Origin: Oopsacas minuta
Lineage: Eukaryota > Animalia > Porifera
DNA length: 64,000 nucleotides
NCBI GenBank assembly: GCA_024704765.1
Contig: JAKMXF010000330.1
Span: 1-64,000 of the forward strand
Direction: 5' to 3'
The notes under the pieces were generated by a model. That model did no database searches and was not told where the DNA came from. It saw only the letters and a program-made list of their open reading frames with translations. Positions 17,761 to 58,200 of the stretch are shown one piece after another; the first letter of the stretch is position 1, and each line of letters begins with the position of its first letter. The translations under genes and the position numbers were made by a program.

Positions 17761-17880
17761 CAGGGTTACCGTGAGAATGGGAATTCTCATGGGAAAAACG
17801 TGGGAAATCCTATAGGAATTCCAATATAGATCCTGTGGGAATGGGATGGGAATTGAAATTCCGTTCCCACAGCAGCCGTG
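17761..17880. mobile_element. Small MITE with GGGAAT repeats
   Basis: cagggttaccgtgagaatgggaatt / attccgttcccacagcagccgtg imperfect TIR; no TSD found. Confidence 0.5.
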
Positions 17881-18127
17881 ACGCCAGAGCATGCTCTCAG
17901 TCTTCTAGCCAATAAATCCTTCTCCAACATCAAAATTTGTAAATAAAGACATCGTATCTTGAACAAATCTAATTTTATACAAAGTTGACAACTATGCTAA
18001 CTTGTACAATCAAATCCTTCCTCAACATCAACAAAACTATAAATAAAGAGCCTGATCCTCACCAAAAGGTAAGTAGTTATTTATATTACTATCCAGCATG
18101 TAGATTTACATATTCGGCATGTATATT

Positions 18128-18961
18128 CAGTGGCGTACCAAACACTTTTGGTACCCCGGGAGGAATCCGAAGTTGGAACCACCCTTTTTCCGTGCGCATT
18201 TCAGGCCAACTTGAAACTATTAGTCAAAACAAAGCAATAATAATCTATTTATTCTATGTAAAGATATGTTAGATAATCCAAAGACGAAGTAATAGAGTAT
18301 TCAGTAGAAGTCTTAGCTAGTTCAGAGAACTTTTGAAACGCAGTCCTTCAAGGAAATTACAAAAATTTTTTTGCTTATATTCCATATCAAAAATGTGGCC
18401 TGAAATCGAGAATTCAGGGTGTGATTAAGAAATTTCAGACAAAGAAAACTGTAAAAACCTAAATAGTAGACCCGAAGCCCGTGCAAGTCATTCCGGGAGA
18501 AATAATTCTGAAGAATGTAATGGAAATTTTGGTCTAAAATCCAAAAATGGAAACATTTTTATGGTATTCATCTAGAACAAGCGCTAATCCTCGTAGATTT
18601 CAAACTACTATAATAATAGCTTGTATTCATCTTGTACACCATTTTAGTCTATAACTATGAGGTTTTTTAATCTCTCATAGATATTATGCACATTCGAAGC
18701 TAATTGTTCGGGCCCGTTGTTTTTGGCCCACCCTGTATGTGAGATGTTATTTTCAACATAAGTTTTGAATGTTAGATAATGTAGGTATGATGAATATATT
18801 TTGTTAGAGAAACCTATTATAGTTTAGCGGGTATGTATAGGAGCGCAGTAACTACATCTGGGATCTCAAAAATATATAATATAATGTATCTCTCTCAGTC
18901 AAAGTTGGCATCCCCCTCTGAGTAGCACTGGGGCGGGCCGCCCCCCCTTGATACGCCACTG
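18128..18961. mobile_element. hAT-type MITE with 8-bp TSD
   Basis: TIR cagtggcgta / tacgccactg; TSD tgtatatt at 18120-18127 and 18962-18969. Confidence 0.9.
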
Positions 18962-21375: not shown

Positions 21376-24300
21376 CAGTGGCGGATCCAGGGGGGGGATA
21401 TGGGGGATATATCCCCCCCCACCAGACTTTTGGCCTCCTAGTCTTTCGAATTCATTCTGATTATTATTTTTATTTTTCTTACAATATTTCAATCATGTCC
21501 TTGATTTATAGCGTTTTTACAATATTTGTTGCTACTCAACTTCGCTCGGTTGTGAAATTAGTATAATGTACATATATATATATATAGCGCTAGGTTAGGT
21601 AATTGCCTTCACCTTTACCTTTGCTTGTATAACTCTGGACAGGTTTGACCACTTTTCAATTTTCCCTGACCATTTTTAATTTGCTTGCGTGTGGCCTGAT
21701 AGCTATTTGTACTTTGACTTTTTCTCATTTTTGTAAATCTAGATATACCAAATTTGATTATGAATCCCAAAAGAAAATGTTTATTGGATTATTTCAGTTC
21801 AAATGCTACTTCCAGTCAGTCATCTAACCCCGAGTTCAATCTGAATATAGATGGTAATGATACAACTATGCAAGAAACGTTGTTGGTAGACCCAGGATCA
21901 CTGTCAAATCAAGATTCTTCTTACATTGCTGAAGGTATGACAGAGAGGTCATCCTTGGATACCGATCTAGATTTATATGATATCGGACATTTGTATAAGT
22001 TCCGCGAGAATGATTGGTTTTTAGATTGTCCTGCACTCTCTGATTTACAAAAATTAAATTTGCTCGCAAAACATCGCATGCCTGATCTTAATTTTTCATT
22101 TCCTTTTGGTGAAAAGCTTATCAGTTCAGCTTCTAAGGGTGAAAGGAAGACTCAGAGGGTCTATTTATCATTTTCTCATATCACTGGAAAATTTGATTGT
22201 TTTAAATATTCGTTTTTAATTAAGGGAGTTGTTTGTGTTCATTGTGCACTGTTCACTTCGAGAGAAGTTGAAAATGATAAAGGAAAGTTAACAAAAGTTG
22301 GTTCATTTGTTCAAACTCCATTTACAAATTACAAAAAGATTCATGATAAGGTTAAAGAACATATTTTAAAAGATTACCACAAATCTGCTCAAGAACGAGC
22401 TGACATTTTCGTTTACAACATGCAAAATTCAAGAAGTATGGTAACATCAATTTGTGAAGCACGTAAGGACGAGGAAAATGAAAATAGGGAACGCCTTATT
22501 CCGATCATCAAAACGATAATCTTGTGTGGTAGATTGGGTATTGCTCTAAGAGGCTACAGGGATGATGGGCAATTAAATGATGAAGTTGATATCTCTGGAC
22601 AATCTGGGAATTTCCGTGTTTTATTAGCTTTTAGGGTTGAAAGTGGTGACAAATTATTAAAGGAATATTTAGTAAAAACCAATAAAAATGCGACGTATAT
22701 TTCAAAAACTATCCAGAACACGTTTATAGATCTGTGTGGCCAAGAAATTCTAAATACAATTGTAAGTGAAATACAGAAAATTGGATACTTTGCTATACTT
22801 GCTGATGAGACAACTGACAGTTCCCACCAAGAGCAGTTATGTTTCTGAAGATGCATTTATCAAAGAAGAATTTATATCTTACGGAGCAATGGAATTTGTG
22901 GATGCTAAGTCAATCACTGAAGAAATACTAGGTCGTGTTACATCTATTGGGTTGAATATTGACAATTATATAGCTCAACGCTATGACGGGTGTTCAACCA
23001 TGTCAGGCTATATTTCAGGAGTCGCTACGCGTATAATGAAACATGCTCCACTTGCAATATACTTGCACTGTGCAAGTCACAGATTAAACTTTGTGCTTAA
23101 TGATTCTTCAAAATTAACAGAAATAAGACACATGTTTGATATTGTTTCTGCGACGATAGATTATATCAATGATTCTTCTGGAAGAAGGAATGTTTTCGAC
23201 GCACAGTTAATTTCATATTGTTCCACTAGGTTTGTTGAGAGACATGATGCAATTATAAGATTCTGTTCCAATATTTCATCTATTGTTTTAGGCCTAGAAA
23301 GAATTATTAGCGACAATCATTTCAATTGTAAATCTCGAGCTCAAGCGCTTTCTCACTTAAATTCTATTAAAAATTCCTCCTTTTTAATATCACTAGCATG
23401 TGTTGGTAAAGTAATTTCAATTACTATTATTCTTTCCAAGATGTTGTAGACTGTGAATCTAAATTACGTTGAATGTATGCAATTAATTGAATCAACAATA
23501 GAAACGCTTGCCGTATTGAGAGAGGATTCACAACAATGGAATGGGAGTAAGCTTAGTGTATTCAGTACAGTTGAATCATACTCACAAATCTTAGGAATAA
23601 CACTGTCTAAACCAAGAAATTCGTCTAAAGGAATTCTCAGTATATCATATGATGAATCTTGTGTAACTATGAGTACTTCTTTGAATCTTACAAGTGAAAG
23701 TACCTGTGACTATTACAGACAAAAATTTGGATTCCCTACATAGATGGAGTTATTGAGTATCTAAATTTGAGATTTTCAGGTTAATCAAATATTGCGTTAC
23801 AATTGAATAGGTTATTACAAACAAATGAAATAAATATAAACTTACTCGAAACTGTGTATTCTTTCTATCAAACACTATTGAATAGTACACAAATGGAATT
23901 TTTTGAGGAATTTAGAGTCTTCCAATCATTTCAAAAAAAGTAGATACGGGAGATATCCATGAGTCCCTTTCAAGTTTGCCATTCCACTTCGAAAATGTAA
24001 AGAAATTATTTCAAATAGCATTGACATTACCTGTTACTACATGTACTCCAGAAAGATGTTTTAGTGCTATGAAAATTTTGAAAAACAGGCTCAGATCATC
24101 AATGTTGGACGAACAACTAAACGGGATTAGCTTTGATGTATATTCATAAGGATATAGAAATTGATATATCTAACGTAATCAATCGATTTGCACTTGGAAA
24201 AAAGCGCAAAATAGATTTTGTAATATAGTATCGTAATTTAGATTTTATATTTTTATATTTTATACTGAATGAATAATTTAACAGATATTCTATATACGTG

Positions 24301-30700: not shown

Positions 30701-33700
30701 TTTTTATCAGAAATGAGTTGTATAAATTAATGAATTGTTCGAATAATTTGCAATTCATATATTGATTAATATTTATCATTATCCAGAAGTCCAAAAATTA
30801 ACATATGCAATAAAGGACGAGTTTATATTTTGGATTACAGGTCCTTAAATCCACCAATCCAATCCAGATATGAGAAAACCTTCAAGGTATACCATTCAAT
30901 CATTCCTTTCTACAAGAAATGTATAATTCGAATAATTCAAATACTATTTTGAATGTACGTCTTAGCTTTTGTTGAGAGAAAATTCACTCATCTAAATTAT
31001 CCGAGCAAATAGTAAACCTCATAGCTATGTAAACTATATCTAAGACGCTATTTTCCGTGTATATAACCAGAATAATATCAAACAAATACGTATGTATGTG
31101 TACCTGTGAATGAAATTCTTCTCTTCGAGATAAGCCATAGCTGAAGATATTTGAGTAGCCATGTATAGGAGAGTAACAGCGTCCAATCCCTTACCACTAG
31201 TGCTTCTTAGGTAGTCGAGCAGATTGCCTTTAGGCATGTATTCTGTAACGATAAAGAATGGAAGTTCTCTTGTACAAACCCCCAGTAGCTGAACGAGATT
31301 AGGATGACGGACCTTTTTCATTATAGAAGCTTCTTTCAGGAATTCTAGACTATCCATAGTATCTTCCTAAATATGTATGTAATATTAAATATTCATCTGA
31401 GACATATATATTATGACATAACATTTCACAAAAAGGCCATATAATTCGCAAATCACCTATAAAAGTAGTACATTGCGAAATGTTTGGGCATTATACAAAC
31501 TGCCCATTTCCCTATATTACATACACCCCAGAGTTACCAGCATTTGTAGCAATAGCTTGTATTAAGAAATATTAAAATTCGAATTATTCCTGTTAGGGTC
31601 ATATTTTTTATAGAAACTATTATCCTTACTTATCTATCTTTTGCAATAATCCGTAAAAACGGTATGATGACCAGCATATGGAAAGTGATAGGTTGGGGTC
31701 TATCTATTACCCAAACATCTACATGTACCATAATTATTGATTAGATTTGAAACATCATACAATATGAATTTGATAGATAAATAAAGCAAGTATTAGAATG
31801 CCACTAAAACTAATCCCTCGTGTATTGAGTCCTGAACTTATCTACGTACTAGCTAGGATGGGACATGGAGACACTATTGTGTTCGGAGATGCAAACTTCC
31901 CGAGCACGTCTGTCAGCAAGGCAGGACCAGAAATTGTCCGTGCAGACGGAATGGACATCCCAACCCTACTGAAAGCAACACTCAAGTTGTTCCCATTGGA
32001 TACCTACGTCGCTGCTCCAGTCGGACTGATGCAGATAGTTCCAGGTGACATAGAGAAGGGACTGAAAACCCCAGTATGGGATGATTATAGGAAAATCGTA
32101 AAAGAGGCGGAGGGAGTTGAAGTTAACTTTGAAAAGATAGAAAGGTTTGATTTTTATAAACGTGCTAAGAATGCGTTTGCAATAGTTGCGACAGGAGAGC
32201 AGGCCCTGTATGGTAATATTATCCTCACTAAGGGTGCTATTCCTCCGGATGCTTGAAGAATTACGAAGAAGTGTAAAATACAGCAATGACAAATAAACTT
32301 GTACTACTTTTCAATGTCTTAGCTTAGGTTACCTAATTAAATGTTTAGCATTTGTAATAATTATAACTTTACTAACTTCCATAATTTAAAAACATATGCA
32401 GGGCTTAGCCCTCCCCATGGACAGGATGACTCTGGAAACGACGCCTAAAACGATTCTATGCACGTTTTAGGAATACCGAATAGCTTAAATATGTAATCAC
32501 AATTGGGGTTTGGGAGAAAGATATAAGATCTACGAAACAGTATATGGTTGATGAACGTGATTATTAGTTTTGTTTGAGGAATGAAGGAAGTCTATAGCTA
32601 CGAACATTATTAAGCTGACCATCCACGATGTAATTGCAACTTTGTAGCATGCAACATTACATGTGTTATTAGCATGGCCTACTTAATACACGGGCGTCTA
32701 TATCACAGAGTAGAGGCAGATTTAGTGTTTAAAGCATTGAACTTTTTATCTATTTTGATTGAAATATTATAATCAAATTCATGTATTACTACGCCTATGT
32801 TGAATACACGTACAAACAAAAATCATTTATTTATTAGAATTTGTATATGTACCGTACAAATAAACAAATTTTTGATAACGTTACTATTAAAAAGAGCCTA
32901 ACCCATGTGAATATGAAGGATGGCCGTAAGAACGTGCTAAGTAGTCTCAATGAATTCCTCATATACGAAAACCGCTAGAAAGTATAATTGGCAAAGTGTT
33001 AGTTTGTCTGAAATGAAAACTAAATCGACCTTCTATTTTTCAGCCTACGGAAACATACACAACCGTGTATTAAGTAAGCAATGGTGATATTAGATTAATT
33101 TCATTATTGTATTCCCTAACAAGGGATAAGAGCTTGCAATTCTATTGGTAAAAGTGGTGGGAATATGGTTCCTAGATGCATTGTAAAGCAGGACTGGTTT
33201 TAATCGACGGAATCCATGTAAAACAAGTGAAAATGTAACAATACTGGCCTGCAACCATTATACTACAGTCCCACAGTGTATGTATGAAAATAAATTATAT
33301 TACAATTGTATTATGTCGAAAGAGAATCCACAGGAGTGTAGAATGAGGAAAGGGGGTAAGGGGGTAAGGGGGTAAGGGGGTAAGGGGGTAATAGATTGGC
33401 GCTAGAAGTTGTTTTACAAAACCAAAGCAGACTGTTTAGGAAATTTCTAGCATTTTAAGTAAGGCTACATACTAAAACAGCTGTAAATTTACAGTATTGG
33501 TTTATGTGTACCATCGATTATCCTCTTCGTTGTTTCGATATCTCCACAAGTATTTCTTTCTATTTAAAATGATATTACCTGAAATATAAATCAAATGAGT
33601 ATTTTGAGATGCAACTTTTCAGTATCAAATTTTAAAAATAATTATTACAAGATTTACCAAATGTGTTAACATACCTTGAATGTTTTAACTGCAACTGTCC

Positions 33701-36700
33701 TATTGCAATACTTCCAGAAAGCTTGATATACATCTCCATACTGACCCCCTCCCAACCTCTTACCCATCTCTATTTCACTGCGGTTAATCTCCCAGTGATC
33801 CTCGTGAGAGACCCCGAATATCGGAGGTTTGTTAGGGTTGTTAGCTGGGTATGTGAGATTAGTTATAAGTCCATCTGGTCGAATCGAGTGGTGCTTAACA
33901 AGATCAACAAGTGCTTTGAATTTGAACTCTGGAGTTACAAAATAGTGAGATTTTTCTAAGTTGACTCGATAATGATAGACCTTCCCCTCAAACCTGAGAG
34001 ATATCGAGTATTGTCCAGCAATGCTCTCGCTCTCTCGCACGAGGAAACTCCCATTAATCCCAGTACTCAGGAAGTACTCAGCTTCATTACGGGAAATACT
34101 ACCATGATACCATGCGTATTTTTTGAGGGATGTTACTGGCGTGACGTAATTAAACGGAAACCATCCTGAGTTACCATTAGAGTTTGTGCCTTCTGCCCAG
34201 CTATAGTCACTATTGTATTGGTGTATTGTGACTTTTTCATCCTTTTTAATACTCAGCTGTCCTTTCGTGGTTGTCTGTAAATTAATATGTCAAAATAGTT
34301 CAAAAGATAAAATAATAAATCAACAATATATTACAATTTTCATTCATGCATATTTGGCCTTGTCCAAGTGATTATAAGGCTCAGCAATTTCATTTTCTAT
34401 AAGCCATAAATTTAAATTTAAAACCATAGAGACCACGAGGGGCTGAGGACACCTAAAGCAATAAGAATTGAGAAATGTTTGTTATTCAGGTGTTTCAATT
34501 TGTAATGTGACCTAGCACGTGGAGTACCCTAGTTGCCATTATTCAGGTTACTATAGAAGTGATATAAAAAGTAACAAAGTGATCATAAGCTGAATTACTA
34601 TTGCATAAGGAACTCTAAAAGAGAATATTCAGAGAGAAACAGCTTGGGGGTATGGGTTCAGTCTTATGAAACCTAGATTTGTGAAATTCCGAAATCTAAC
34701 TGAAAGGGTTCAGATTTAATTTTGAAACACGAGTAGGATAACTCTGTTCTCCTAATTTTATTTCAATAATCGTAGTGTAATATACAAATAATTGATAAAA
34801 ACAGTTTAAGAAATAATGAAAATATAACTCCAAATCTTGTCATCATTATTGTCACATTTTACAGCAACAATGGGGTCCACTTAAATATAAATGAAATTCT
34901 AGTATTATGGGCAATAGAGTACAATGGATAAGTGCTATACTAAGGTCGTATAATCAGATTAACAGTGTTTCGCAACCTTTTTCGAACTGCGACACAGCTA
35001 CAGATGATTTGAAAGCATGTATTCTATCCCAATGACATTTAGGGGCACACTTAACAACATACTGAGGCACAACGTCTGAGAAACACTGAACTAGATACTT
35101 TTAACGTATTATTGAAATAAATAATACGCATTAATAGTCTAGAAATCCAGACAACAGGAACAGGAGAAGTTCAAGATAACTGAAATAGTAAATTAATCAA
35201 CAAAGTTATTACAACTGGTAACTTATCTTATATAAATCAATAAATAGTAAGCGAATATTATAGATTACTAACTCACATTAAACTCATGTAGAACAAGACA
35301 AATATTTTCATCTTCATTACTACTAGCACTACATGGACTACCAAACATATCAGGGCTGTCAGAGTTACATCTTGGAGCAAAACTCTCTCTTGAAACATCA
35401 GACATAGAGCGACTACTCATACTTCCGATATCTGACAGGCTCTGAAGTTGAGGGTGAGATATTTCAGGCAGGCTGAAACCTGGGGTCAGTTCTACAATTA
35501 TGAAATATATAATTTAACCGAAATTATTAATAGAAATAACACAGAATTGAAATATATGTCAACTAGTCAGAGATGTTTGTATTAGAGTAAGATATAAATA
35601 CTGATATTCCAAACTGAAATATTGAGACAAAGAGAAGAATTCAACTAAGTTAGAATACAAATGAATTATTGAGCATTGCACTGGTTTAGTGTAGAAGAAA
35701 CCTCTGCAGATTCTGCATAATTCTCAATATGTCATAGTCCGAGCCCGTACGACTACTATAGAGCAGTCAGTACAGTATAATTGATTATTTTAGCCAAACA
35801 TTCACCTATTATTATTACCCAATAGTATGCCGATAAATATGTTTGAGAAGTATTTTTACTAAATTGCGTATAAGGATTGTGAACCCTGTCCTGTCTATGC
35901 AACATATTATGTTCCGTATAATGGCTGCTGTTAGATCGTAGAATAATACAATACTGTATACCTGTGGCGACTTTTATCAAATTAGTGCCTGGATGACCGA
36001 CCACTTGACCACTAAAGATAGTTTAATTATTACAACAATTCCAATAATAGACTAGGCAATTGACTATATACGTATAGGCCGGTTATAAGGACACCCTTGG
36101 GTGTTACAAATACGTAATTAAAACTTCTCTCCCGATTCCAATTGGATTATATTGGAACCTCCCGAAACGACTCTGTGAGAATCGGACAACCTACCCATAG
36201 CACAACTGCCGTAAAGTGTCCGTTATTCAGAGGTTCCGCGGTATCGGGATTAAGACGATTGTTCGTATATCGGGTGATGTTATAGTAGGTATATTTGTAT
36301 AGCAATTTATAGATTATAGAGTGTTGAATTTGAAAAATTCGAAAAATTGATTCAAATAATTCATTAAAAATGCATTAAATTAATATTAATAGTACACATT
36401 GTAAGGGTTAACAATGAAAAATAAAATTTAATAATTCAGTCTCTTGATTGTTAACTTCTATCTCCCTGTAGAGATTAATCAAACTTCATATATTATTATT
36501 TACACTACACAACAACTAACAACTTGATGCAATATCAACAATAGCAGAGAACCGTTATAATTCTCTAATTGGACCTGAAACCACATGAATATATGGCGAG
36601 ATGAAAGGAATGAGAATCTTACCATAATTTGTTTATGATATTAAAATGCTAGATATAATAGATATTTAATAATAGCATTTTAGAATTGTCAAGTTAGTTG

Positions 36701-39700
36701 GAAACATGACGAGTACATAGTATAATGAGAAGGACTATATTATCTCTAATATTAATTATTACCAATAAAGATAGGAATACAAATAGTATTATATTCCCTT
36801 AAAGAGAGATTATACGACGATATTTACACACGGTTAGCTAGTAGATTGTTGACATAGAACAGATGTGGATAATATGAGCAATAACTACGGGGAATTCATT
36901 TGGGAGAAAAGAATCCATAAGAAGAAGAATTTTAGTTTTATTCTTAGAAATTAATAAATTGATATGAGACTAGTGTGATCTTACGGGGATTTATAGGTAT
37001 TTGCTTGCATAGAATTAATCACACTTTGTAAATTGGATAAGGCAGAAAATAGGCAACAACTGAAAAAGAATAATAATAATAATATACTAGATTGATTAGT
37101 GATAATTATGGTAGATCGTGACGGGTGGATTTATTTTCAGGAATTTTACTCGTATTCGTGCAAACTTCTCCTCTCAGATGGGATAAAGGTAATTTTGAAG
37201 ACCTTACACCATCATGAATTTACTCGCACGATAGTTGAACCCCTCTGAGGTGTGGTTCGGATATTAGTGTGGTTCTTCACTCTTGAGGAATAGCTTACAC
37301 GAATATGATGAAATTTTTGTGAGAAGTAATCCATAACAACACCTATGAATATCGTATTTACTCGAAAAGTAGTCCTTACAAGATTAGTTGCCAACCTAAA
37401 TTATCACACCCCTGATTGCTATGTAAATTAATAGCATCTATACTGAATAATCCCTCTCTGAATAGTTATTAATCTAGTTACATAGGATAATACCCCTCGG
37501 CAAGTACACGGATACACCTATGTCTACAGTAATTACCGTATTTCATAGAATAGTATTTCCCTCTGAAGGTGACAAAAGTAAAAATCGTCCAGTGACTATT
37601 CGAATAAATACGATATAATTCATGAATAGTTCCGTCGTAATTCAATCTCATCCAATTAGTTTCTCGCTGAAATTTCACTTTATTGAAGTCACATATTAAT
37701 CTACAATACTTAGGGATGTGTATACTACAGTATGTTAATAATACGATGCATACCATTACTGGAAGAGTAGTGAATTGAAGTAGAACTGGCAGAGATCAGG
37801 TCAAGAGAAATATTGTCATCTTCCTCACTACTTCGCACTTCCAAAATAAGATAAATTAAATCCTCAATTATCACCTTGTACAGATTATCCATAGTAGCTC
37901 TATGCAAGGCAAGTCTTGCAGCTGAATCAAACACATTATTAGATAACCTTCTTGCATCAAATGGTGAGAAGGAATGTCGCTCTAGGACTGTTACTAACTT
38001 GTTCATATACAAACAGCCAAGCGACTTAGCCCACACAGTCTGAGAAATGCTATGAAATGTGAGTATATTACAGTCATTAATTTCTGACTTATCAACTAAA
38101 TAATTTGTCGGTGAAAATGGAGCTGACAAGAGTAAATTGGGTAGTTCTGGATTAGGGATTGAAGGAATACAAATTTTGCATTGGAAATACGTTTCAAAAT
38201 GTGTTGGGTTAATGAATTCACTCACAGAATTTTTTATCAATATACAATTAAGTTCATCCACAACAGCACTAGCCAGTTGAGATCTCAAAGAGGAGGGGAT
38301 CTGTTCATAAAGAGAGCAGGGTAGGTCCATGAGGAGACGTGGAAAATCAAATGGAAGATAACATGAGAGTTTATGTATTAAATCAGCATAACTATCTCGT
38401 ATTTCATTCTCGAATGATAACAAGAATTTCTCATTACTCGTGTAAGATAGATAAGTTGATATTATCAGGTCGTATAGAGGCGGAATAACTTTATTCCTGA
38501 CAATAGGCTTAGAACGAGTGAGGGAATGAAGTGAATAAATAGATATATACTCAAAGATAGATTCTCTCAGCAGTACTCTCAGCCTAGTTGAGGGTTGGAA
38601 AGAGGTCGGAGTACAACTCGTTAGCATTCAGGCGTATTAATAAGTGCGTATTGGAAAGGGATTCGAAGTAAATTATTCAATTTGATACGCATATCCTCAA
38701 ATTTAGTTTATATAAGTTAGAAATGCATCATATGGAAAGCTTACTGAACCATACCAGCTATTAGAGACTTCCTATGCGTCGTGCTCGGAGCATATAACTG
38801 AAAAGCACTGTAAATCTCAGCAAGTTCGTATATTAATTAAGGAAATATTATTTATTACAATTAAATAAGAACAAACTGCTAGAAGTACTCGACACACGTA
38901 TAAATTAATAACCATTCTTCTAATAACCAATTCTATATTTATGGAAACATCAACAAATAGCAACCATTAGTACTGAAATATTGAGTGATCTATTATACTA
39001 TGGTAGTTATCATATTGTGGTCTGCGGTAACTAAAGAGACTATCCGAAAGATTCACGACTGAAAAGCAATAATTACCACACAGAAGGGTCATTCAGAATG
39101 TTTGCAAAATATTGGACTGACGAAGGAAATCATCAGGATCTGGAATAATACAACAGAATTAATTATATTAGTGTAGCAATTATTTTGACTTTTTAATTAA
39201 TGAGGTCATAAAAATTAATGAAATTATAAATGAATTAAATTCACACAATTTTGCCTCAAACACGTTAACAAAGTGTAAGTACTGTTAATCCTATAATAAA
39301 GTATATTAGCTTAAAGCTTTCATCTCAAATAAATTATGGAGAAAAACAAGCATGGAAAACATATTTGAATACATAAAAACACACACTGTGTATATTTAAG
39401 CATAACGACCGAATAATACAATGCTTAACGAAATTAGAAAACCATTCCAGAACTGAATCAGGAATCAATATTTATGACAGAACTGATACAAAATCTGAAT
39501 AAATTCATTAATAACGCATGGATTAATAACCATAAAATTCCAGAATTTGTATAATTCCTAACGAGCGAAATATTACAAAATTTAGGATAAAATATGGAGC
39601 AATGGTCTGAGGTACTTATAATCAATATAACCGCTTCGCGACTATAGAAGCTAAGATCTTTCAACAGCCGCGAAGGGATTACATTCTGACACTGCATGCC

Positions 39701-42700
39701 TCAATTAAAAATAAATTCTCTTTTTAGTGCAGCTCCTATAGAGGAGATGCCCTAATGGTATGGGGGATGTACGACGTCCGTACGTCAGTCCCCGCGGCAG
39801 TGCGAAATATAGCAGTCTGATTTACATGAAAACTGGTACACTTATACATTTGCATTTCGGGTTGGAGATTGGCACCTCGAGTATGACTTTTTTCCAATGT
39901 GAAATTTCACACCTTTTTGGATATGCATCACATTTTCACAACATACTATGTAAAATTCAAAAGCATGCTAGAGATTAGGTTTCAATATGTCAGGGGTAAT
40001 CGGGTGCGTAAAGTCCGATTTTGAGATTTTGAGAGGCTGAAAGTTACAAATTAACAAATTTATCATATAATCACCCGAACAGGTCAGAAATGCCCTGCAA
40101 AACAGAAATTAGGCTTCGGTCATCTAGTATCTTCAATCAATCTGGACATACATACGCAAACGTAATTATGTATACACATAATGATATAGAATTCCTCCGG
40201 AAAATACTTATCCAGTAGTCATTATCACCGATGATAAACTTCAATAGGATGACTTTTCCTATTGTAGATCCCATCGATAGGATCTAACGAGGTAAGATCC
40301 TAAAATTCGGGTGCTACTGTATTCTAGTGTAAAAGATTGGGCCGATAGAGGACCTTACCAGACCCTAGACAGTAAAAATGTTAAATTACCATATTCGATT
40401 GGAGCGCGCTCCTATTTACAAATTACAGATTTCATCGTTATTCTGTATAAAATTCAGTATTCATTGGTATAAAAAGTGGATGCTGGGACACTTTTGTATA
40501 ATTCACAAATTATTGAAATGGTTTGATCTTGTAAATTTAGTAATTTCCTGAATGTACAATGGTTAAATTCAATCCTAAATAATTAAAATACAAATAAAAT
40601 GAAAAGGAGCGCGATTAGTGCGCGCTCCTTTTTCGGGGCGGTAGAGTGGGCTTCAGAAATGATGAGTGCTTAATGCTCTGGTGTATAGTGATCGTGACCT
40701 ACCTTCCAAAAACAATTCTGATATGATATAATTCAATCAATAGAGATTGCATAGCAGAATTAGAAGTAACGAAAAGTATTGCAGCCTATATTATGAAATT
40801 ATTTTGTATTTTACAGCCCACCTGCGAAATACTCAAGTAACTCAACGCTGATCTGATCAACCATTTTACAAGAATAATATTCAAACTAGATAACTGTTTC
40901 TAAGCTAATAAGCATCACTCAGTTTCATACTGGTGTAATACATACTAATTTATGGTATCTATATTTGAAGTTATACAAAAAGATTTTAGCTATCTAACTA
41001 AAGAATTATAGATATTAGGAATAGTTAAAATCACCTAATTAATGAATCTAACAGAGTATTCAGTGAAGTGAAATGGTCGCAGAGAGCATGTGACTCAGTC
41101 GGTTACCATACATAATTATATATAATATGGGGTGTATGCAGTACCGGATTTAGGAGTGTTCGGAGTGTGTGGCCGAACAGGGCTCCCACATTTAGGGCCC
41201 CCCCACAACTCAACGTCATTAATTTTATACTAGAAACATTTGACTTCTCTGGCCTTATTAATGATTCTGCGGCCAGAAAAGCACGCAGAGTGATCTTATA
41301 GAGTAATTATAGTTATTGTATATTCATGATATATTTTGTGCAACTAAATAATTAGAGGTCATGACAAGTCCTGCCATGCTGCCACTGGGCGAAATAGGTC
41401 TTCGGCCAGGGTGGTACTACTTTTGGGTTGAATTTACATATGCATAATTTGAATACAATAAACACAAGCATTCTAAATTGAGGAATGGGGACAGGTGGGC
41501 GAACCGTGACGGCTTTGAATTGGCTTCAGGGGTCCCGGGAATTGCCCTCGAACAGGGCCCCCACATACCTAAATCCGGCACTGGGTGTATGGATATATAT
41601 TCTATACAAGTGTTCGACAAATTCAAATTTACTTGGTGGCTAACCTAAGCCACCAAAATATTAATTTGGTGGCCCAAGTCGAAAATTTTTACCCAAAATG
41701 CAAGGAATAAGAGCACTGTTCTAAACCCACGCACCCCAAGAATCAGCCAATTGCTGGTTTGACAGGCAATTGCACCAATAACTTTGCGATAAGTTCGAAT
41801 TTTACTACAGAGCTCTCAACCTGCCACTTTCAAAATAGTGAGACGAGAGAGTTGAGAGCCCTGAACCTTACAAATTAAACTAATTATCAGCTCAATTTCA
41901 TCGATACATTATCATTAATCGTCTATATTTCATGGCAGTAGCCTTGGGCCAGCCATAGCCACTATCATAAAAATGTTAATTTCATTTCATAAGCTTGCTA
42001 CGATCCTGTATTTCACAATACAGGATCGTAAAAGAATGTGACAGCTGCCTTCAAGAGTGTCTTCTAAAATCTTACGCTGTACTCAATAGGTGCCAATTTG
42101 ACTACATTGAAAAGAATAGTTCTCATAATGCAAAATCAGCCAAAGAAAATTGTGGGTGTCAACAGCTTCAATCTTGGAGCTGAAATGCTCCGTAATCAAC
42201 TTAACCCACATACCTACTGATACTGAATTTACATGGCAGAAATACTAGAATAGTCGTATGCTAATACAGCTGTAAAATAGCTAAGTTTGTGAGAAAAGAT
42301 CTGCTCATGGAACAGTAAGACATGATTGAACAGAACAACAATATGCTCAGGAGGGATAAAATCAGTTGATAGATCAATTGCATGGTTATAGAAAAGGGGA
42401 AATGATGGAAATGCTAGTGAGTTAAGATATAACGACGAGTAAGTGAAACGCTTTCTACTGTAGATATACTTAGATATGTTGAGGTCGTCCGCGGGCCTAG
42501 TAAGTATGTGATATGCAGCTGTTGATTTGGGATAAAGATTCTAGATTATGTGATATGCTGATATTATTGCAACCTGGATAGTTCGCTGGTTGGACCAACC
42601 AAATGCTAGACAGCTGGTTACTTGGGGTGTATGCGAATGTCATAATAACTAATGATATACGAATTTAACAAATTGTAAAATGCACATAATCACTTGATAG

Positions 42701-43065
42701 CAGTTACTGGAAGTGCATTGAATGGGTATTCGTTATGTGATTATTGTCCTGTTAGCTAGTTTGACTAACGAAGACCTGAGAATCACATACAAAGCTGTAT
42801 TCATTCGTTAATGGCAATATTTGTGTGATAGCAAATATATGGTGAAATTAATAGAAGTCATGAACAACTTAGCCAAATATATATACTCACCATTTCCGGT
42901 TAAATGAACTGGCTTCCTAGGAAGAGGCTGAAGTCGCTTAGAATGTCCTAGATTCGTTTGTGAGACTAAATCGTTGATAGGTTTAGATATAGTAGTAGTA
43001 GTAGTACTGTTTGGTAAGTTATCACTATTTTCGTTCTGCTTCTCAACACTCTGATTCTGGCCCAT
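27779..43065 (-). CDS. ABL1: ABL non-receptor tyrosine kinase, about 808 aa; exons 42891-43065, 35277-35491, 33675-34274, 31104-31366, 29933-30126, 29538-29690, 28947-29036, 27779-28515
   Basis: MGQNQS start resembling Abl-1b; SH3 (LVLHEFN...GWFPFNYV); SH2 ([30 protein letters not shown]); kinase ([41 protein letters not shown]); Pro-rich tail. All junctions GT-AG and phase-consistent; exon 1 linkage is inferred. Confidence 0.92.
30540..30678. repeat. CCGAATA-rich MITE end (second copy 49938-50118)
   Basis: Shared aatatcagtattcatgaatag...ccgaatact...tattgaa...ccttg in both copies; preceded by a solitary Tc1-like end gcctggccaaaagtattagaacacc near 30511. Confidence 0.6.
31798..32256 (+). CDS. 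FUOM: Fucose mutarotase (RbsD/FucU family), intronless, nested antisense in ABL intron 3
   Basis: [26 protein letters not shown] and [33 protein letters not shown]. Confidence 0.95.
   Translation: MPLKLIPRVLSPELIYVLARMGHGDTIVFGDANFPSTSVSKAGPEIVRADGMDIPTLLKATLKLFPLDTYVAAPVGLMQIVPGDIEKGLKTPVWDDYRKIVKEAEGVEVNFEKIERFDFYKRAKNAFAIVATGEQALYGNIILTKGAIPPDA
33352..33391 (+). repeat. (GGGGGTAA)5 tandem repeat
   Basis: Five exact 8-bp units. Confidence 0.95.
37725..38627 (-). CDS. Orphan 300-aa ORF in ABL intron 1, same strand (independent gene or alternative ABL first exon)
   Basis: 903-bp ORF in AT-rich intron DNA with protein-like composition; no recognisable domain; phase-1 donor AATG|gtatgc at 37754/37753. 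Confidence 0.7.
   Translation of the reverse strand: MLTSCTPTSFQPSTRLRVLLRESIFEYISIYSLHSLTRSKPIVRNKVIPPLYDLIISTYLSYTSNEKFLLSFENEIRDSYADLIHKLSCYLPFDFPRLLMDLPCSLYEQIPSSLRSQLASAVVDELNCILIKNSVSEFINPTHFETYFQCKICIPSIPNPELPNLLLSAPFSPTNYLVDKSEINDCNILTFHSISQTVWAKSLGCLYMNKLVTVLERHSFSPFDARRLSNNVFDSAARLALHRATMDNLYKVIIEDLIYLILEVRSSEEDDNISLDLISASSTSIHYSSSNGMHRIINIL
39721..40417 (+). mobile_element. Non-autonomous element with T-rich start and 3' hairpin (Helentron-derived-like, tentative)
   Basis: Starts tttttagtgcagctcctatagaggag; putative end ggagcgcgctcc hairpin + tattt; 5' part has a second copy at 26948-27055. Confidence 0.45.
41139..41583. mobile_element. hAT-type MITE with 8-bp TSD
   Basis: TIR cagtaccggatttagg / cctaaatccggcactg; TSD ggtgtatg at 41131-41138 and 41584-41591. 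Confidence 0.92.
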
Positions 43066-55200: not shown

Positions 55201-58200
55201 GGTTCCACTGTAATGTAATTATAGTAACAATGTTGAAGTATGTTTGTAGCACGTAAATTCCCATAAACTTACGTGTAATATGTATGTACTAGAATATGCT
55301 TAGATACGATGTCTCTATTGCCTCAGTAGCAATATAGTATAATAACACCGCTCAACAAAAATTTTGTTGCATTTCTACCAACACTTGTTTTTACCTAATA
55401 TTGGGGCGCTGAATCCGAATCCGACCTTAGTTTTTTTCCGCAAGCTCTAGATTTTTTGCAAATCGAGATTTTTAATTTTTTTGCACAAAATTCATATTTT
55501 TTGAAAAAGTGACATGATTTGTCAAATGATGTTCTGCTTACAGTTGAATAACTAGCCTCAAAACTAAAATAGGTGCCAAAAAACTTTTATGTTGCCAATA
55601 GAAATTGTATTTGTAGACAGATGGGCAACAAATGTTTNNNNNNNNNNNNNNNNNNNNNNNNNNNNNNNNNNNNNNNNNNNNNNNNNNNNNNNNNNNNNNN
55701 NNNNNNNNNNNNNNNNNNNNNNNNNNNNNNNNNNNNNNNNNNNNNNNNNNNNNNNNNNNNNNNNNNNNNNNNNNNNNNNNNNNNNNNNNNNNNNNNNNNN
55801 NNNNNNNNNNNNNNNNNNNNNNNNNNNNNNNNNNNNNNNNNNNNNNNNNNNNNNNNNNNNNNNNNNNNNNNNNNNNNNNNNNNNNNNNNNNNNNNNNNNN
55901 NNNNNNNNNNNNNNNNNNNNNNNNNNNNNNNNNNNNNNNNNNNNNNNNNNNNNNNNNNNNNNNNNNNNNNNNNNNNNNNNNNNNNNNNNNNNNNNNNNNN
56001 NNNNNNNNNNNNNNNNNNNNNNNNNNNNNNNNNNNNNNNNNNNNNNNNNNNNNNNNNNNNNNNNNNNNNNNNNNNNNNNNNNNNNNNNNNNNNNNNNNNN
56101 NNNNNNNNNNNNNNNNNNNNNNNNNNNNNNNNNNNNNNNNNNNNNNNNNNNNNNNNNNNNNNNNNNNNNNNNNNNNNNNNNNNNNNNNNNNNNNNNNNNN
56201 NNNNNNNNNNNNNNNNNNNNNNNNNNNNNNNNNNNNNNNNNNNNNNNNNNNNNNNNNNNNNTCGCAGTTATGGCACACAATATGAGGAGACCATTTCTTA
56301 TCTTGATCACCAAGAGGGATACCAAAGTATGCTATGTAGGCACGCTTCACAAACGATGTTATATTTCGTCTTTGACGCGAAAGCGTATACACACCACAGA
56401 TGTAACAAAATGAATCAGGGTTATTTTTGCATTTATGTCTACTAGAAGAAGCCATGATCAAATCTGAAGAGTTAAGAATCGAAAGAAAGTCTGTTGATAT
56501 CTATGTAACTTAACACAAACAAACTGAATAACAAAGCCTTGGTTCTAATTAAGGCTACCAGCAGACGAGCGGAAAAATACAGCTTAAATGCCTATTCTGC
56601 TGCATCTATCCACGATACTTCACTACAATCACTTAGGGTTGTTTGAATTAAATCATTTCAAAAAAATCAACATGATGATTTTTGATTTATTTAAATTTTG
56701 ACACTTCGCTAATAGTGTCATGTTTTCAGAGAACAATAGAGTGGTGCTTTTGTGTTCAATAGATTGAAGCCATTACTAAATCATAGTAACAGCTACAATC
56801 TAAGAAAAATGGCTTGATAGATAAAAAGTATTTGGTGGAGATCAGATTTATGTACTAAATAAGTACCACAAACGAAAAAATTTAAATTGTCGATTGCATG
56901 AAAACTAGAGCATGCAGAAAGAAACTGATTGCAGATTTGAAATCAGCATCCCAAAATTATATAGAATCAATTGAAAAATCTCATGCAACAAAAAATGAAA
57001 AAAAAATTGTTGAGCAGTGTAATAGCTCAATACGAATTGATTTCAAGGTCATTAGGAGTAAAGGGAAAAATCAGGATAATTTAGGCTCATTAACAAGAAG
57101 TGACCACGAGCTAATAAATTGTCCCTTCTAAATTAAGATTTGTAATAAATTTAAGTGCATAACATATTAGGTTATGTAATATCAGTGGTGAGAGCTATTC
57201 TGCATACTAGATGCTTACAAGAGTAGAGTACACAAATAACAATAAAGAAATGATATATGCAAATAGTGCGACTGCATTGATAGCAAATTTCATTGAAAGT
57301 AATGTGTCATACATGCTGATAGAGCAAGTATGATGTTAATATTATTAATTAATATGATAATGCTAAGACAATGGAAATCTATGGGATATAAATCACCAGC
57401 AATTACAATGGGTTATTTCTAAAAAATTTCTTAAGAATCAAATGTGTGACACAAGAACAATTTTCAAGCTAAGGAGATAGAATATACGTACTATTATAAT
57501 TCGAGATAGAGTATGTGACAAATTAAAATAATTAGCAATTAGAAATTCTATCCAGTTACAGTAGAATTAGAACCTCTATAAGTGGGGAGGTCGGGCAGGC
57601 GAATCTCCTGTTAACTCCCCTTTCCTCATTTATAATTTAAAATGTAAAAGTCCTTTAACCAGAGAATATATAGCCACTTCCTCCAACGACTGTTATTTCA
57701 ACGATATTTAATTGATATATTGTGCACTAAGGTTGTTTGTTGGTTCAATATACAATTTTGTAAGAAATTCTCTCCTGAGAAACCAAAATTTCAATTCATC
57801 ATAGCGATAAATACGTGTTTTTTTCCTCCAAAGCTAGCACAAAAATTGATCATGCAAGAAATTTTTCAATGGTGTGAGGCATAATTATAAAAGTATGCCC
57901 CATTCCTCACTCCCGCTTATAGAGATTCTTTTCTATGGAAACGAATGGAGGTGGACGATAATTTCCCCGATTATAGAGGTTCACCATTTATAGAGATCCC
58001 ACTTATAGATGTTGCACTGTATGCGATTCTTTACATAAATATTGGGCGTACCTAACAAGTCAAAGACTATCCTCGCCTCGGGCACAAATTAGAAAGCTCA
58101 TTTCAATTATACTGCTGCTGAAAATTGAATGACAAATTGATGGAGTATTAGGGGCATGAAGGGTCCATTAACAGCCTACCTCTCCGGTCATTGGTCATTG

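Follow-up and report, generated by a model that had tools for sequence, protein, structure and literature searches.

An open reading frame (ORF) of 300 codons lies in the first intron of an ABL kinase gene of the sponge Oopsacas minuta, and our comparison of related sequences indicates that it is a real, conserved coding exon under purifying selection. From its position, phase and flanking signals, we consider it somewhat more probable than the alternatives combined that this exon serves ABL as a third, giant alternative first exon, joined to exon 2. The analysis covered a 64,000-nucleotide stretch of DNA (contig JAKMXF010000330.1, positions 1 to 64,000; hereafter the window), to which all coordinates refer unless another sequence is named. 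The ABL gene and the ORF are both encoded on the minus strand, and a slash within a nucleotide motif marks an exon boundary.

The host gene was assigned to the ABL family by an SH2 domain followed by a tyrosine kinase domain whose nearest solved kinase is ABL1. Pfam searches of the host exon ORFs returned SH2 and PK_Tyr_Ser-Thr, and the best PDB matches were to ABL1 (E = 1.5e-37), with Fgr as the best non-ABL kinase (E = 5.7e-16); the exon ORF at 33666–34040, encoding the last part of SH2 and the first part of the kinase domain, identifies the gene. Exon 1 (42891–43065; 175 nt) is located upstream of the ORF and opens at 43065 with MGQNQS, a myristoylation-type start of the form MGxxxS that recurs as MGQN(Q/P)S in 6/6 related loci, myristoylation itself being predicted from sequence. 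It ends at the donor AATG/GTGAGT in phase 1, as do its counterparts in all six of these loci. Exon 2 (35277–35491) encodes the cap region and the beginning of SH3, and follows a phase-1 acceptor, TTGTAG/AACTGACC, kept as TAG/AAYTGAC in all loci; the split codon G/AA specifies Glu and is followed by LTPG. The first-exon junction of human ABL1 is also in phase 1, with G/AA as the Glu codon that opens exon 2. Intron 1 of the sponge gene measures approximately 7.4 kb, and the mean intron size reported in the Oopsacas minuta genome paper, which also describes Illumina RNA-seq, is 341 bp (PMC10280926).

The same gene order was found in 6/6 related genome loci, running from Ets and NAP1 through ABL exon 1, the ORF, ABL exon 2 and the SH2 exon to an antisense FucU gene and the kinase exons. 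The FucU gene (31798–32256, plus strand) is a complete RbsD/FucU gene of the fucose mutarotase type that occupies, in antisense orientation, the ABL intron separating the SH2 exon from the kinase exons, and it is kept there in all related loci; ETS genes adjoin NAP1, so that nested genes are a feature of this locus. Several further observations were made along these sequences. One relative only, L001, carries a Tc1/mariner-type transposase (HTH_Tnp_Tc3_2 and DDE_3) in an ABL intron at its positions 17838–18860. Elsewhere in the window, two long overlapping ORFs of 364 and 227 amino acids at 21754–23449 (plus strand) resemble one frameshifted gene, possibly derived from a transposase, and a run of N at approximately 55640–56270, representing an assembly gap, gives rise to artificial long 'ORFs' of X in all frames.

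The 300-codon ORF extends from an ATG at 38627 to a TAG at 37727–37725, and its ATG is immediately preceded by an in-frame TGA at 38630–38628. Within it, AATG/GTATGC places a candidate 5' splice site at 37748–37753, with 37754 as the final exon base and the TAG nine codons farther on. The candidate coding exon thus delimited (37754–38627) comprises 874 nt, that is, 291 codons counted from the ATG plus one base, and ends in phase 1. A preceding sequence-only reading had pointed to the stop directly before the ATG, to this donor with a stop nine codons later, and to the agreement in phase with both the MGQNQS exon and the exon 2 acceptor, and each of these features is present in the window as described. 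The length of the frame cannot be due to chance: the intron stop-codon frequency of 0.076 predicts approximately 4e-7 ORFs of 300 codons per window, and the maximum over 200 shuffles of the window, which is AT-rich (GC ~34%), was an ORF of 184 codons. The runner-up open frame in ABL intron 1 has 105 codons. An adjacent ORF of 92 amino acids (37478–37756) was conserved in no relative compared and was set aside as noise.

Conservation extends across the clade. Seven related sequences share 45–60% identity with the ORF; a word-based search returned six homologues of 236–396 amino acids (50–59% identity), none with a Pfam domain, and a profile search of 1.84 billion representative proteins gave only four matches, all from the same clade and all ORF-sized, one being a fragment from a further species. 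The window's exact 300-amino acid product was absent from the records of public assemblies in an exact look-up. The earlier description of the ORF as an orphan therefore holds insofar as it belongs to no known family, but not in the sense of a species-specific sequence, given seven clear homologues in related assemblies. The frame is intact in 7/7 loci, over distances at which synonymous sites are saturated, and dN/dS was 0.17–0.31 in each pair with an estimable dS, with dS saturated for the more distant pairs. It is single-copy, and in 6/6 related genome loci it lies between ABL exons 1 and 2 on the strand of ABL; the Met-Leu start is retained in most species. An apparent truncation in L006 was traced to the gene caller, which had picked a later Met, and the frame is open along its full length. 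We also considered whether L007 (SRR11455655) might represent a transcript, and rejected this on the grounds that it contains the promoter region and that its sister records are labelled METAG, denoting metagenome DNA, and a literature search for these accessions returned nothing; the Logan contigs carrying homologues are metagenome DNA, and no contig derived from RNA turned up.

The 291 residues upstream of the donor correspond to a protein segment of ~33 kDa with a pI of 5.5, rich in Leu, Ser and Ile and devoid of any transmembrane-like segment. It could not be placed in a described domain family: Pfam returned no family at E values up to 1, the best match in a PDB profile search had E = 0.39, and an Atlas feature search yielded no usable match to a cluster. 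AlphaFold2, run on a shallow alignment of seven sequences, gave mostly helices, but at low confidence (pLDDT 39.7, pTM 0.21). Judged by the distribution of its homologues, the domain appears to be restricted to glass sponges, or to this clade.

The region upstream of the ATG has the features of a promoter. A TATA box, TATATAAA, is found at 38707–38714 (TATAWAW in 5/6 species and TATAAG in the sixth), followed at 38685–38694 by the motif ATATGCGTAT (ATATGCACAT in relatives), present in all seven aligned sequences. Farther upstream, the conserved elements GAAGTCTCTAATAGCTG and GTAAGCTTTCCA at 38733–38771 presumably form the proximal promoter, and the upstream blastn match to L006 extends to 38831. 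GTAAGCTTTCCA, the TATA box and the motif, with consensus ATATGCRYAT, are common to 7/7 aligned sequences upstream of the ATG, and the TATA box always stands 24–27 nt before the GCA of this motif, the distance usually seen from a TATA box to a transcription start. The motif is therefore the likely start region, with the start predicted near 38688, in which case the 5' UTR would be ~60 nt long. In the window, the ATG within the conserved ATATGC opens an upstream frame of 23 codons (38622–38694, minus strand), which overlaps the main ATG in another reading frame; its counterpart in L001 and L007 shares the frame of the ORF. This ATG may precede the true start site by a short distance.

Because the TATA box and ATATGCRYAT are conserved at this fixed spacing of 24–27 nt, the ORF is best regarded as a first exon rather than a cassette exon: it has its own conserved promoter and start codon, and no usable in-frame acceptor lies upstream. 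The sole conserved AG near its N-terminus belongs to an Arg codon (AGR) and is in phase 2, so that its use as an acceptor after a phase-1 exon would produce GGC TGA. Splicing of exon 1, or of the short start exon described below, into the ORF was accordingly rejected on three counts: TGA directly abuts the ATG, the TATA promoter is conserved, and the phase of the only conserved AG would bring an immediate stop.

At the other end of the exon, a conserved helix ending in LILEVR gives way to Ser-rich tails whose length and sequence vary between sub-clades to the point of being unalignable. Nevertheless, a phase-1 G/GTA closes the tail in 8/8 homologues (the window, L001, L006, L007, L002, L003, L005 and P0012), providing a conserved 5' splice site in phase with the exon 2 acceptor. 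The donor reads ATG/GTATGC in the window, L001, L006 and L007, ATG/GTACGC in L002, CCG/GTATGC in L003 and ATG/GTAATT in L005, and the donor end of P0012 is represented by NG/M... in the protein; GTATG-type donors are used elsewhere in the clade, for instance by ABL exon 1 of L009. Beyond the donor, the frames of even close relatives diverge, and the read-through stop, which in the window is the TAG at 37725–37727, is variable in position and lies 9–117 nt away. In the species of L007 and L009, the first stop past the donor varies among individuals or samples (proteins P0001 and P0010 as against P0007–P0009), giving read-through products of 349 and 336 amino acids. A shifting, polymorphic stop of this kind is as expected of unconstrained intron sequence. 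A recursive splice site at 37754 was rejected, as AG/GT is absent there.

A second candidate start exon was found between exon 1 and the ORF, at 40822–40864. It is 43 nt long, consists of 14 codons plus one base, ends in phase 1 at the donor GCAG/GTGGGC, and is conserved in 6/6 related species, in which the changes are mostly at third positions or synonymous and the GT donor keeps its position and phase. It is contained in a conserved block at 41021–40806, the upstream part of which spans 40865–41021, and resembles a '1a-like' start, short and equipped with a promoter block of its own, that would serve as an alternative ABL first exon. Exon 1 and this exon are in phase 1 in every species, the same phase as the donor of the ORF. 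This short exon suggests that alternative ABL N-termini are old in the clade, and the gene seems to possess three such first exons (58, 14 and 291 codons), each in phase 1.

Between the donor of the ORF and exon 2, sensitive blastn and tblastx comparisons detected neither coding conservation nor a conserved exon, and the only conserved segment was a non-coding block at 35736–35503. This block (minus strand) adjoins exon 2, has ~66–68% identity in L001, L006, L002 and L003, and contains stops in all frames; it includes ...TTAGTAATTCAATTG...GAATTCTTCCCTTTATA and may serve as a splicing element within the intron or as part of a promoter. The polyadenylation signal AATAAA is missing from this interval in 5/7 loci, and in L001 ATTAAA is lacking as well, so the stop and poly(A) signal of its own that a nested gene would be expected to conserve inside the host intron were not found. 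With no conserved last exon or poly(A) signal before exon 2, transcripts from the ORF promoter therefore have no conserved end upstream of ABL exon 2. Joining the donor to the phase-1 exon 2 acceptor would read ...SSSN-E-LTPG with no stop.

These features outline how the putative isoform would be made. The TATA-type promoter of the exon would initiate transcription ~60 nt upstream of the ATG at 38627, and the exon would encode a soluble, probably all-helical domain of 291 residues with the variable Ser-rich tail at its end. The phase-1 donor at 37754 would then be spliced to the exon 2 acceptor at 35491, forming the split Glu codon G/AA. In the predicted product, the lineage-specific domain replaces the myristoylated MGQNQS start of the cap, and the remaining cap residues, SH3, SH2, the kinase domain and a long C-terminus come after it. 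Such a substitution might affect autoinhibition, oligomerization or localization of the kinase. The sequence-only reading had proposed an isoform of this type, pointing to the relief of autoinhibition in BCR-ABL, with a nested gene of the lineage as its second choice. A conserved coding exon with its own promoter, a phase-1 donor in 8/8 homologues, a second start exon, and an interval free of conserved exons and poly(A) signals all speak for the isoform, while the join to 35491 is the step that we infer.

Several considerations weigh against an ABL isoform. The phase match alone has a one in three chance of arising, and no protein fusing the domain to SH3-SH2-kinase was present in the library of 1.84 billion representatives. 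The ORF could instead belong to a two-exon gene nested in ABL intron 1, in which 37754 is spliced to a short, fast-evolving last exon and the transcript ends before exon 2. We regard such a gene as unlikely, albeit the most serious competitor to the isoform. It would account for the conserved promoter and the conserved donor as well as for the missing fusion protein, and nesting has precedents at the locus, both in FucU within an ABL intron and in the ETS genes beside NAP1; these other nested genes are, however, antisense, whereas the ORF is sense. Acceptor-like AGs followed by early stops occur shortly past the donor in the window, L001 and L006, and allow for a very short, unconserved last exon. 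In the window, a stop comes a few codons after the acceptor-like TTTCAG at ~37667, but this AG is not kept in relatives and is lost even in the closest, L007. Conservation from the donor to exon 2 is, moreover, limited to the non-coding block adjoining exon 2, and the lack of a conserved polyadenylation signal also argues against a transcript that ends within the intron.

A nested gene with a single exon, translated to the TAG at 37725, would require the conserved GGTA to reflect coding or some other constraint instead of a splice site, and we judge this to be distinctly improbable. An unspliced mRNA could end at an AATAAA located 70 nt past the donor position in the window. This signal is not conserved, and a strong unused donor near a poly(A) site tends to suppress the use of that site. 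In addition, tails of differing sequence and length have only the terminal GGTA in common, and the residues past it are unconserved, with the stop found at any distance from 9 to 117 nt and polymorphic within a species. Least credible, and already disfavored by the conservation described above, is a decaying remnant of a former gene or domesticated mobile-element ORF with no present function. Although the lack of a matching family and of a confident structure prediction would fit such a remnant, it is hard to reconcile with a frame that is intact in all seven loci despite saturated synonymous sites, with dN/dS values of 0.17–0.31, and with a single copy that occupies the same syntenic position in each genome. 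On balance, we favor the alternative first exon of ABL.

In ABL, a classic example of kinase autoinhibition, an N-terminal myristoyl latch restrains the kinase, and replacement of the latch by a foreign N-terminus activates it. If the giant first exon is joined to exon 2, one may conceive of a regulated 'open' ABL isoform, in which a third promoter swaps the myristoylated start of the cap for a newly evolved, lineage-specific 33-kDa helical domain that retargets or oligomerizes the kinase and so bypasses the latch; we offer this functional reading tentatively and consider it possible but doubtful. The closest parallel in gene structure is human ABL1, which uses two alternative first exons, giving isoforms 1a and 1b (PMC8115115). 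Like the human gene, the sponge gene would combine several promoters and first exons in one kinase gene with a common exon 2; it has one first exon with an MGQ... start of the myristoylation type (MGQNQS in the sponge), and its candidate alternative first exons lie inside the intron that follows the myristoylated one. The human first exons, in contrast, contribute only ~26–45 residues of the cap, whereas the sponge exon would supply 291 residues forming a conserved, lineage-restricted domain; there are two first exons in human ABL1 and apparently three in the sponge, where splicing is predicted from the sequence.

The proposed product also resembles BCR-ABL and TEL-ABL, in which a foreign N-terminal segment is attached at ABL exon 2, the myristoylated N-terminus is lost and SH3-SH2-kinase is kept (PMC8115115; bioRxiv 10.1101/2024.10.02.616342). 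Those fusions, however, are somatic translocations whose partners supply oligomerization domains, while the sponge isoform would be germline, conserved and regulated. The intron-nested FucU/RbsD gene at the same locus offers a third comparison: like the ORF, it is a conserved coding unit with its own promoter, wholly contained in a host intron and kept in place across species. It differs in being antisense, of known family and complete as an ORF, whereas the sponge ORF is sense, has a conserved donor at its end and lacks a conserved stop or poly(A) signal.

Should the ORF prove to be a separate nested gene, it would be an ordinary lineage-specific gene with no assigned function. If, instead, the exon joins exon 2, an animal lineage would have fixed an arrangement like that of a leukemia translocation, with a large foreign domain placed before SH3-SH2-kinase and switched by promoter choice. 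Such an isoform would provide a natural system for studying the effect of a bulky N-terminal domain on ABL regulation, and would illustrate cleanly how a lineage-restricted domain can be recruited as a first exon.
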